A stretch of 64,000 nt of DNA, taken from positions 558,001 to 622,000 of the forward strand of contig JAIVFI010000014.1 in assembly GCA_025558095.1 (NCBI GenBank). Direction: 5' to 3'. The stretch is from Hyaloraphidium curvatum SAG 235-1. Taxonomy: Eukaryota > Fungi > Monoblepharomycota. Under the pieces are notes generated by a model. That model searched no databases. It worked only from the letters and a program-made list of their open reading frames with translations, and had not been told where the DNA came from. Position numbers and translations under genes: made by a program. How positions within the stretch are numbered: position 1 is the stretch's first letter; each line of letters opens with the position of its first letter. Below, in pieces: positions 18,560 to 22,686 of the stretch.

Positions 18560-19261
18560 ATGCCCCGATCCGGCTCCGCCGACGCCCTCCTCGCGATCCG
18601 GGGCGGCACGCTCCTCCCGCCCGCCCGGTCCGAGCGGCACTTCCAGATCCCGCACCGCGCCAGGTCCGCGCTGCGCGGAGCGCAGGCAATGCTCGGGATG
18701 TTCCTGCTGTTCCTCCTCGGGCTGCAGGACGCCAAGCTGCTCGAAGACCGGACGGGCGCCGCGGGCCGCGCGGCGTGGTTCGCGGTCGGGTGGTCGCTGG
18801 CGGTCGTGTGCTGGGGCGCGATGCTGTATCTGTTCCCGCTGTAAGCTGCCGCCGCATGCCGGGCGCATGTACCGCCAGAACTCACCGGCACCCCCGCCGG
18901 CGCAGCTGCATGAAGTGGCCGTCGGTGCGCGTGCTGGTCGTCGAGATGCTCGCCGACGCGAGCGCGCTGCTGATCCTGGGGACCAACGGGTTCGCGCTGC
19001 TGAGCGGGATGGGCGACGCGTGTCCGATTCTCAAGTCGGCCGCGTGCGACAGGTGGGCTTCCGGTGTCGCTCCGGAGGCGGCCCGCGCTGACAGGCCGGG
19101 GCAGGTACAACGCGTTCATGGCCTTCTTGGGCATTGATTCCATCGTCTGGCTCGCGGCAATAGTCAACTCGGCGTGGAACCTGTACCGAGGTCTGAGGCC
19201 AAAGGGGCTCGACGCGTACGAAGAGGACGCGCTGCTCCGGCAGGCGATGCGGAGAAAATAA
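18560..19261 (+). CDS. Four-TM MARVEL-like membrane protein
   Basis: Three exons give four hydrophobic helices with a Cys-containing loop (ACPILKSAACDRYNAFMAF). Confidence 0.6.
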
Positions 19262-19369: not shown

Positions 19370-19936
19370 CTAGAGGCGAAGCTTCATGAAGAGGGCCACT
19401 TCCTGCTTGTCAAAATCGTCGTTGCTGTAGAAGGACATGTCGAACTTCTCGATGGTAAACCCCATCGCCCGATACGCCCTAATTGCAGGCACATTTCGGT
19501 TGGCCGTCTCGACCTCGATTACGCGGAACGACCTCTTGCGGGCCTCGTCGGCCAGCGTGGCCATCATGAGCTTCCCGACGCCCCTGCCGCGGTGCCCCTC
19601 GGCGACGTGGAATTCCCAGAGATTTACGGTGCCGTTCCAGGGCGTCGTCCCGGCGATGACCAGCCCAATCGTCGCTTCCCCGTCCTTCGCCAGGAAGCAG
19701 AGCCCGCCGGGCCGCACCAGAGACCCGTAGAAGTTGACGAGCTCGCTGCGGTGTTCCCATCGCTTCACGAAGGGTTCGGGCAGCTTCTCCAGTTCGAAGC
19801 GGAACGTCGTAAGCGCGTCCGCCTCTTCCCTGGTGAGCCTGAGCAGTTCATTCGACACATAGCCCACAGAAAGCGAAAGGAAGATGTCTCTGGAGAAGGA
19901 TTCCCAAGGGACGACAGTGATTTCGCCCGATGCCAT
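19370..19936 (-). CDS. GNAT acetyltransferase, streptothricin/nourseothricin acetyltransferase (Nat1/Sat)-like, intronless
   Basis: WNGTVNLWEFHVAEGHRGRGVG, ETANRNVPAIRAYRAMGF, FDMSFY..EVALFM. Confidence 0.85.
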   Translation of the reverse strand: MASGEITVVPWESFSRDIFLSLSVGYVSNELLRLTREEADALTTFRFELEKLPEPFVKRWEHRSELVNFYGSLVRPGGLCFLAKDGEATIGLVIAGTTPWNGTVNLWEFHVAEGHRGRGVGKLMMATLADEARKRSFRVIEVETANRNVPAIRAYRAMGFTIEKFDMSFYSNDDFDKQEVALFMKLRL

Positions 19937-20070
19937 GCGGTTCGCGGTTGGTGTCGGAAAAAAAGTCGTTCCGATCCGACCGGCCCAGCTCTTTGGGTGG
20001 CGGGCTGGCACGGACTCCGTGTCCCGCATCGGAGAGCCCCACGAGCGGCCGCCCTCGGACCATCGTCGCG

Positions 20071-22686
20071 ATGTCCGACTACGCGGACGACGTGGCCACC
20101 AACGGCCATTACAACGCGTCGCCGGAGAAGAACGGCGAGAAGCGGCGCCGCGTGACGCAAGGTGGGCTTCGCGGCGTCCCCCGCCGGCCCCGCTGACTCC
20201 CGCGGCCATCCCGCCCCGCCTGCCCGCGCGGCCGACGCAGCATGTGAGCATTGTTTGTTTGCTCCGTGCTGCCGCGGTTCTGACAGTCCCCGCCCCCGGC
20301 CGCCCCGCCGTCCCCCGCCGCAGGCGACCTGTGCTCGGAGCAGCGCGCAAAGTGTGACTCGATGAAGCCGTGCGCGCGCTGCGAGAAGCGCGGCACCGAG
20401 TGCACCTATCTGCGGCAGCCGAAGCGCCGCGGCCCGCCGAAGGGCACCGCAAACAGCATGCGCGAGCGGCTCTCGCGGCTGGAGCAGATTTACGGCGCCG
20501 TCAAGGCTGAGGAGATGCTGATGATGGCCGGCGTCGGCGTCCAGCTGTCGCAGCCGTCGCATATGATGAACGGCGGCCGCGCCCCGTACCGCGGCGTGTC
20601 CGTGGCGGCGTCCGCCGCGGACTCCGTGTCGGGCGACGAGGACGGGATCCGCAGCCCGGACAACTACGGCTCGCCGGCGCCGTACGTTCGTGACATCAAG
20701 CCCTCCGCTGCGGCCCTTGCGGCGGCGAGCGGCGATCCCGCCAGCCGCATGTCGATCGGGTCGCTGCTGGCCCAGCACAGCGCCAACGCCAACGGCCTGG
20801 TCACCTCGCCGCCGGCAAAGCCCAGCTCCTCCGCAACGCCCCCGCTCTTCCTCATGACCTCGGACAGCTCGCTGTCACTCATGCTGCCGCCCGAGGTCTT
20901 TGCCTCGGTCATGGACACCTACTTCACCTCCATCTTCCCCACGATCCCCATCATCCACCGCTACTCGCTCGAGCGCAACCCGCACTTTTACCCGCCCGCC
21001 CTCCTCTTTGCCGTCATGGCCGTTTCCGTGCGGTTCAACAACCACGCCTTTTTCGACACCCCGGCGGTCAGGGAGCAGTGGGCCGAGTGCCTGTTCCAGC
21101 AGGCCCACAAGCTGCTGCAGCCCCTGATCCTGGATCCCAAGCGCGTGCACTACCACCACGTCATCGCGCTGCTGCACGTGGTCAACTACTTCTTCCACAT
21201 GAAGGTTCGCGGCCGTCGTGCAGGCCCTGGCGAACCCCTCTGATCTGGATTCGCCAGACGGCGCTCCTTATTTCGACGCGCGGAACGAGCCTCGTTTTCG
21301 TGCTGCTTCGCGAACTGAGGCTGGATGAGGAGACGATCGCGCAGTGCCCCTTGCCTCGCTGGGTCCAGTACGAGGGTGAGATCACTTGCTTGCTTGCCAG
21401 AGTGCTGCTCACCTCGCGCCCTCAGAGTTCCGCAGGCTTCGCTGGAACATGTACTTTCATGACCGCGTGCTGACCTACGGCGCCGGCGCCGGCATCCGGC
21501 CCTTCGCTCTCGCTCGCAGCTCGCTCATCAACATGCGGTTCCCCGTGGTAGGTTGCTCGCCCGTCGTGCCTGGCCTGTGCCTGACGGCCCGACAGAACGA
21601 CAACCTCTGGCTCAACGGCGACACCACGGAGCCGGTCGCCACGTCGGCACCGATCACGTTGTCCATCTTCGAGCGCGACCTCTCGTCCTACGCCATCTTC
21701 ATGAGCGAGCTGGCACCCCTGTCGCGGATGATCATCCTTTTCTCTATTTTTGTGGGTGCTTCTCCTCCCTTGGCCCGCCAACGTTGTGCTGATTCTTTTT
21801 CCGGCGAACAGGAAAAGATCGTCTGCAACCTCAACGGTCTTCCCGGAGCCGAGTCCAAGGAGACCATCGCGCAGATGCTCGCGACGTGGTACGAGTGCCA
21901 GCCGCCGGAGGACAAGTTGCTCTCGTCGACGTCGGAGCCGTCGTACGGTCTGATCTACCTCATGATCGTTTACGTGGGTTGCCAGCAACACGGAGCAAAA
22001 CTCTTGTCACTGACGACTTGCCCATGATCAGCACACAATGGTGGTCATCATCCACTCGCCTTCCAACCTCGACGACATGTGGGCGGACGAATCGTGGCTC
22101 CTCTCGCAGGATTTCCTGGTCGCCGCCGAGCACGCGGGCCTGTGCACCAACTACCTCGAGGCCAACCCGCGCGCGCTCCAGTTCGCGCCGTACCTGGTCA
22201 AGATCTTCGTGCAGCGGGTTTTCTGCATGCACCTCATGCTGGCCCAGAAGCTGGCGCACGAGCAGACCTTCCAGGAGGACCTGAAGCGCAAGGTGAAGCT
22301 GCACATCCAGGCACTCGCCGTCATGGGGCGGACCGACAAGGTGGGCACGATCCTTTGGCCGGGGTGGAATGAAGCACCGTGCTGATGGGGACCGCAGATG
22401 TCGGCGATCACGGCCAAGCTGCTCGCGGTCACGGCCGAGGGCTCCCTGGGTCAGCTGCAGGGATCCGTCGGCGAGGTGTTCGCTGCCGCCGGGTTCACGC
22501 CGGAGGAGATGGCCATCATGGCCGACATCAACAAGGACTGGATTTCCGAGGTGGGGCGCGTCGCGCTCGATACGTGGCGGCACGCTGACGTTCGCTGCAG
22601 CGCGCGGGATTCCTGTCGCAAATGAGGTCGTTGATGCAGCGCAGCGTTGGGGTCAAGCCTCAGGAGTCCCCGCAGCCGGATCCTGA
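20071..22686 (+). CDS. Zn(II)2Cys6 transcription factor with fungal-specific TF domain
   Basis: Spliced KRRRVTQACDLCSEQRAKCDSMKPCARCEKRGTECTY; YFTSIFPTIPIIH, EFRRLRW; many introns. Confidence 0.9.

Follow-up and report, generated by a model that had tools for sequence, protein, structure and literature searches.

The stretch of DNA analysed here, referred to as the window, comprises 64,000 nucleotides of the Hyaloraphidium curvatum SAG 235-1 genome (contig C14, positions 558001-622000). On its minus strand it carries a complete open reading frame that runs from an ATG at 19934-19936 to a TAG at 19370-19372 and encodes a GNAT of 188 aa that we named SatL-1 (Table 1). The translation (WNGTVNLWEFHVAEGHRGRGVGKLMM...EARKR...VETANRNVPAIRAYRAMGFT...FYSNDDFDKQEVALFMKLRL) has no internal stops and needs no intron, and it matched the Pfam family Acetyltransf_1 (PF00583) at 8e-18. 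An earlier note, made from the DNA letters alone, had described an intronless GNAT gene at this position; its coordinates were right and all the motifs it quoted were present in the translation. SatL-1 is single-copy in the genome (31.9 Mb, 55 contigs) and lies about 577 kb into C14, which is longer than 620 kb. Its neighbours include Zn_clus/Fungal_trans, DUF3431, ADH and PP2C genes. The gene divergent from SatL-1 encodes a Zn2Cys6 transcription factor, with Pfam Zn_clus and Fungal_trans matches on the exon ORF 20362-21240 when the exons were searched separately. Introns were inferred in this gene because the coding homology switches reading frame. The earlier note had spoken of intron-containing neighbours; a fungal Zn2Cys6 factor does adjoin SatL-1, with putative introns placed from these frame changes. 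If the putative first exon of the factor (20071-20160) is real, the two divergent start codons are 134 bp apart.

Table 1. Features of the SatL-1 locus, in window positions, and the second Sat-like gene of the genome
Feature	Position	Strand	Basis
SatL-1 CDS, 188-aa GNAT, stop codon included	19370..19936	-	ORF/translation, Pfam, PDB matches, AlphaFold2 model
A151, Y155, F160, Y170 (= SatA A145, Y149, F154, Y164)	19427..19486	-	alignments
V142-E143 (= B. anthracis SatA L136, E137)	19508..19513	-	alignment to 3pp9
Acetyl-CoA binding motif R116-G-R-G-V-G121 (GNAT motif A, R/Q-x-x-G-x-G/A)	19574..19591	-	alignment
Strand W100-N-G-T-V-N-L-W-E108 (W100 = SttE W98, E108 = SttE D106)	19613..19639	-	alignment to 7ypu
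Last exon of convergent left neighbour	19064..19261	+	C-terminal peptide aligns with translated end of L005
SatL-1/Zn2Cys6 factor intergenic region, short, divergent	19937..20070	.	sequence and frames; first exon of the factor putative
Zn2Cys6/Fungal_trans transcription factor gene, divergent from SatL-1; putative extent	20071..22027	+	exon ORFs, tblastx/blastn
SatL-2, Sat-like GNAT, 198 aa	C8:655317-655913 (= L010:1477-2073, stop included)	-	six-frame genome search

A second fungal copy of the locus

A relative of SatL-1 with 62% identity, P0001, was located on the metagenome scaffold L005 (2.7 kb, 55% GC), of which JGI and Logan copies exist. Upstream of the GNAT gene and divergent from it this scaffold carries a homolog of the Zn2Cys6 factor, collinear with window positions 20311-21961 by tblastx and blastn in blocks of 70-80% identity. 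Downstream of the GNAT gene is the C-terminus of the convergent left neighbour of the window (19064-19261). Both flanks of SatL-1 are matched in L005, and the three-gene arrangement is therefore common to two fungi of differing base composition. In both fungi the Zn2Cys6 factor has G-D-L-C in place of the expected first Cys-x-x-Cys, with five cysteines left (window 20071-20400; L005 reverse strand, about 1357-1600).

Base composition and substitutions were compared between the two genes. The GC3 of SatL-1 is 0.81 as compared to 0.83-0.92 in the neighbouring host genes, and that of the P0001 gene is 0.65 in its 55% GC contig, showing that the ortholog follows its own contig. Synonymous sites between the two are saturated (pS 0.77) and dN is 0.36, both ORFs are intact, and each of the two fungal proteins retains the residues for catalysis and binding. 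Judged by these values SatL-1 is under purifying selection. As a relative at 62% identity has the same fungal genes on both sides, we regard SatL-1 as a chromosomal, old and composition-adapted gene under such selection, and the shared gene order puts its acquisition before the two fungi diverged. Two metagenome scans returned no further fungal-type SatL-1 orthologs and a profile search of protein collections returned no named fungal match; the apparent rarity of SatL-1 among fungi rests on these protein collections and metagenome scans.

These data bear on two rival readings. Bacterial contamination or an assembly chimera could be suspected for a gene that is intronless and bacterial-like. 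We consider this scarcely credible, as SatL-1 sits between fungal genes some 577 kb inside C14, the same three-gene arrangement occurs on an independent metagenome contig and the GC3 resembles that of the host; contamination was ruled out by synteny and composition. SatL-1 is physically part of a fungal chromosome, with fungal genes on its flanks and these flanks conserved in a second fungus. SatL-1 could also be a silent or decaying relic, unexpressed and without a phenotype, and the C at -3 before its ATG is indeed a weak context. This is improbable given that the ORF stayed intact in two fungi despite saturated synonymous sites, with a dN of 0.36, that both orthologs keep their catalytic and binding residues and that the codon composition matches the host.

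Relation to the streptothricin acetyltransferases

SatL-1 was compared with all PDB chains using phmmer. The first match was SttE/STAT of S. lavendulae (7YPU, 3.5e-17), a streptothricin self-resistance enzyme crystallised with its substrate (PMC10156733). It was followed by Nat1 of S. noursei (5C82), which matched over residues 76-185 at 7.3e-15, and by B. anthracis SatA (3PP9), colinear over residues 17-186 at 6.9e-10. These are the three streptothricin acetyltransferases of solved structure, and the first GNAT below them was at 1.3e-8. The likeness to Nat1, which the earlier note had put forward, is real and far above chance. A family profile made from SatL-1 and 35 homologs (36-sequence alignment) matched Nat1 (5.5e-28), SatA (7.2e-28) and SttE (1.1e-23) over the full length, followed by the next GNAT at 8e-17. 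An AlphaFold2 model of SatL-1 was predicted from the same alignment with a mean pLDDT of 97.2 and a pTM of 0.90, and a Foldseek search of the PDB with this model returned SttE, Nat1 and SatA alone in the top 10 (E 8e-14 to 3e-12, TM 0.72-0.86) with every other GNAT at 1e-8 or worse. The lead of the Sat enzymes over the next GNAT amounted to 4-5 orders of magnitude in Foldseek and 11 orders with the profile.

Scores on the NCBIfam models were highest for STAT, followed by rimI, Sat3 and Sat2, with Sat4 scoring too. On the STAT, Sat2, Sat3 and Sat4 models SatL-1 reached 59, 29, 41 and 26 bits, all below the allele-level cut-offs of 360-420 (420 for STAT), and it is therefore none of these named alleles. 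An annotated genuine SatA reached only 48 bits on the STAT model, so the missed cut-offs do not exclude membership of the Sat family.

Comparison with individual enzymes gave a consistent set of likenesses and differences. SatL-1 shares the GNAT fold with STAT/SttE (7YPU/7YPV) and Nat1 (5C82), which are its top sequence and Foldseek matches, and similarity extends through all of the C-terminal 100 residues, but SatL-1 is missing the acidic insert that the Streptomyces enzymes have in their N-terminal half, and unlike STAT/SttE it does not lie beside a streptothricin biosynthetic cluster. SatA of B. subtilis and B. anthracis resembles SatL-1 in size (about 185 aa) as well as in its colinearity, yet the identity is low (25%) and SatA and Sat2 group with the second Sat-like gene described below rather than with SatL-1. 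The mobile or metagenomic resistance genes Sat2, Sat3, Sat4 and SatB share with SatL-1 the family and the conserved key positions; they differ in that SatL-1 resides in a eukaryote chromosome between fungal genes and not in an integron or plasmid. The divergence of SatL-1 from these genes is comparable to that among the named families themselves, which average about 29% identity (PMC12542778).

Residues implicated in binding and catalysis were then located by alignment. Within the acetyl-CoA binding motif G119 is invariant and R116 and G121 are nearly so in an 11-sequence alignment of SatL-1, its fungal ortholog, bacterial kin, SatA, Sat2 and STAT-type proteins. Across SatL-1, the ortholog, its bacterial neighbours and annotated SatA, Sat2 and STAT-type proteins the invariant columns are G119, E143, N148, Y155, G159 and Y170, and Y155 and Y170 are invariant in every Sat reference aligned. 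E143 is invariant in both the 36-sequence and the 11-sequence alignment and aligns to the proposed catalytic glutamate. In B. anthracis SatA this residue is E137 and streptothricin binding is assigned to L136, A145, Y149, F154 and Y164, according to two publications that sum up its mutagenesis (PMC11702664, PMC12542778), and the six positions are given as identical in all seven named Sat families (PMC12542778). Measured against these residues, SatL-1 is identical to SatA at the catalytic E137 and at four of the five binding positions (A145, Y149, F154 and Y164), and the fifth, L136, is replaced conservatively by V142.

The strand W100 to E108 corresponds to a part of SttE where W98 contacts streptothricin and D106 is the proposed base (PMC10156733). 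Throughout the 36-sequence family alignment W100 never varies and E108 hardly does. The contact comparison with SttE covered nine contacts, the N-terminal ones not being reliably alignable. Five of the nine alignable ligand contacts are kept in SatL-1 (W98 to W100, D106 to E108, E141 to E143, Y168 to Y170 and E176 to E179) and four are altered (E105 to W107, T143 to A145, L167 to F169 and S173 to F175). Together the sequence, the predicted fold and the key residues support placing SatL-1 in the Sat/STAT/NAT branch of the GNATs. SatL-1 is distinct from Nat1 itself and adds to a family of enzymes already known, in a host that is unusual for it.

Origin of SatL-1 and of a second Sat-like gene

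Relatives of SatL-1 were collected by searching 1.84 billion cluster representatives exhaustively, and 191 proteins were returned at E<=1e-10. A single cluster, the fungal P0001, exceeded 45% identity. Apart from P0001, SatL-1 has its place in a clade of environmental bacteria, mostly Chloroflexota, at 45% identity or less, and word-based and profile searches agreed with the exhaustive search. The relatives that bear a name are without exception prokaryotic (MAGs of Anaerolineae, Anaerolinea, Anaerolineales and Chloroflexi and one Thorarchaeota MAG), and several carry the IMG label "streptothricin acetyltransferase". A scan of one genome per bacterial and archaeal species found three loci, two in Ardenticatenaceae and one in Actinomycetota, and a language-model atlas returned Chloroflexota and Bacillota clusters. 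The contigs of three near relatives were inspected and are bacterial and gene-dense. The nearest relatives are GNATs of Anaerolineae/Ardenticatenaceae (Chloroflexota) MAGs, which are 34-45% identical to SatL-1 over the full length and fall in the same clade, but unlike SatL-1 are prokaryotic, stand in gene-dense contexts and are uncharacterised. The member labelled Thorarchaeota MAG (P0217) falls within this Chloroflexota-type clade and may represent binning contamination or another inter-domain transfer.

In trees of 115 and 71 rows SatL-1 and P0001 formed a clade with 100/100 support. This pair was nested in a 40-row environmental bacterial clade (SH-aLRT 92-97, ultrafast bootstrap 75) in trees that are unrooted and poorly resolved inside that clade, which is called bacterial from its named or inspected members. 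References were added from plasmid records, namely satA of B. mycoides, sat2 of E. coli and STAT-type GNATs of S. rochei and another Streptomyces. The S. rochei protein scored 297 bits on the STAT model and served as the stand-in for Nat1. With these references the STAT type fell in a 54-row group with the SatL-1 clade (SH-aLRT 96) and SatA and Sat2 fell in the other group, in a tree that is unrooted and has no non-Sat outgroup. Global identity to SatL-1 is 25% for SatA (B. mycoides), 21% for Sat2 (E. coli) and 26% for the S. rochei STAT-type protein. As placed by these trees no characterised enzyme falls in the immediate clade of SatL-1, whose nearest kin are uncharacterised Chloroflexota-type GNATs. 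Another STAT-type GNAT, in Streptomyces sp. NBC_01243 (L024:2815-3345, 186 bits on the STAT model), is encoded on an 869-kb linear plasmid and looks mobile because IS1380 and IS4 transposases flank it on both sides.

Horizontal acquisition, as the earlier note had proposed, is the best reading of these results because the relatives of SatL-1 are bacterial; the fungal pair lies inside the 40-row bacterial clade and the gene is integrated among fungal genes. Of the comparisons that it had called for, the sequence searches put SatL-1 in the Sat branch and the trees put the fungal pair among bacterial sequences. The nearest kin are not the Streptomyces enzymes of the Nat1/Sat type, to whose C-terminal half it had likened the protein, but Chloroflexota-type environmental GNATs. 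A bacterial origin of SatL-1 is well supported, and the best explanation is an ancestor from an environmental, mostly Chloroflexota-type bacterial clade. It is very improbable that SatL-1 instead descends vertically from an old fungal GNAT that most lineages have lost, with an artefactual bacterial affinity. Two fungi do share the gene in synteny, and the searches covered protein collections, but the presence of just one cluster over the 45% identity mark in 1.84 billion representatives, the wholly prokaryotic set of named relatives and the nesting of the fungal pair in a bacterial clade all argue against vertical descent.

The six-frame search of the genome also identified SatL-2 (Table 1). 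Its best PDB matches were SatA (2.4e-16), Nat1 (3.9e-13) and SttE (1.1e-10), and many bacterial proteins, among them those of Longimicrobium and Chloroflexi MAGs on megabase contigs, share 53-68% identity with it. The clade of SatL-2, which contains MAG proteins labelled Gemmatimonadota and Chloroflexi, falls together with SatA and Sat2, and SatL-2 has a Cys at the position of SatA F154. Within a few kb of SatL-2 there is an AAR2 gene, which we take to be a eukaryotic context, as well as Biopterin_H and ELFV_dehydrog genes. A single fungal origin of SatL-1, P0001 and SatL-2 was rejected by the AU test (p = 0.0002), for a group that was defined after the tree had been seen. SatL-2 looks like an independent and probably younger acquisition than SatL-1. 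Two independent captures, of SatL-1 from the Chloroflexota-type clade and of SatL-2 from the clade that groups with SatA and Sat2, which both yielded active streptothricin acetyltransferases, are possible, and we propose this combination tentatively.

On a 3.6-Mb bacterial contig (L026:1-3576) a homolog of SatL-2 directly follows an ABC transporter operon made up of ABC_tran and two ABC2_membrane genes, a setting compatible with a role in drug resistance. A third GNAT of the H. curvatum genome, on C38 (L011:1348-1932, minus strand, 194 aa), matched SatL-1 weakly (E 1.7e-8) and was set aside; it is without the E-T-x-N-x-N-V-x-A hallmark around the catalytic Glu and probably belongs to an unrelated GNAT subfamily.

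Proposed function and significance

Streptothricins are among the commonest actinomycete antibiotics and are toxic to eukaryotes, and this toxicity is what makes nourseothricin, paired with nat1, a standard selection system for fungi. We propose that the ancestor of SatL-1 came from a bacterium, that a fungal lineage acquired it ahead of the divergence of two fungi that are now far apart, and that it has been kept intact since. The protein would bind acetyl-CoA, and Glu143 together with E108 would deprotonate the beta-amino group of the beta-lysine chain of streptothricin. Acetyl-CoA-dependent acetylation of this amino group would then detoxify streptothricins, as the acetylated drug would no longer block the ribosome. 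Such an enzyme would protect a fungus living in soil against actinomycetes that make streptothricin, and selection with nourseothricin could be weakened by it. We give this reading as a whole, a GNAT of the streptothricin N-acetyltransferase branch with a bacterial ancestor, early entry into fungi and streptothricin acetylation as its activity, a probability of roughly 55%. Streptothricin acetyltransferase function is plausible for SatL-1, and the fungus may resist nourseothricin by means of it, as the earlier note had suggested.

Alternatively, a protein of the same fold and ancestry could act on another amine, such as a beta-amino acid, a polyamine-like metabolite or a basic antibiotic other than streptothricin, and give no useful streptothricin resistance. 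Characterised enzymes are lacking from the 40-row clade, SatL-1 departs from SttE at four of the nine alignable contacts, the bacterial homologs had no consistent resistance-type gene neighbourhood on the contigs inspected, and the substrate range of GNATs shifts easily. We nonetheless hold a change of substrate to be less likely than streptothricin acetylation. The residues reported as common to all seven named Sat families (PMC12542778) are kept bar one Leu to Val change, both Foldseek and the profile rank the Sat enzymes well ahead of other GNATs, and annotated Sat references fall on both sides of the SatL-1 clade in the unrooted tree.

The literature searched contained no account of a streptothricin acetyltransferase native to a fungus. 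Bacteria are well known to have passed small metabolic or detoxifying genes to fungi, and SatL-1 is therefore an instructive case and not a new principle, made somewhat more notable by the second, independent Sat-like acquisition in the same genome. If SatL-1 is active, antibiotic-inactivating genes pass from bacteria to fungi and are then long retained, and its activity would explain or predict background resistance to NAT markers in this lineage. An active SatL-1 would also extend the streptothricin resistome, which has been called under-sampled (PMC11702664), into an uncharacterised Chloroflexota-type clade. If both SatL-1 and SatL-2 are active, they would be native eukaryotic streptothricin acetyltransferases, and H. 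curvatum would be a fungus enzymatically armed against an actinomycete antibiotic.
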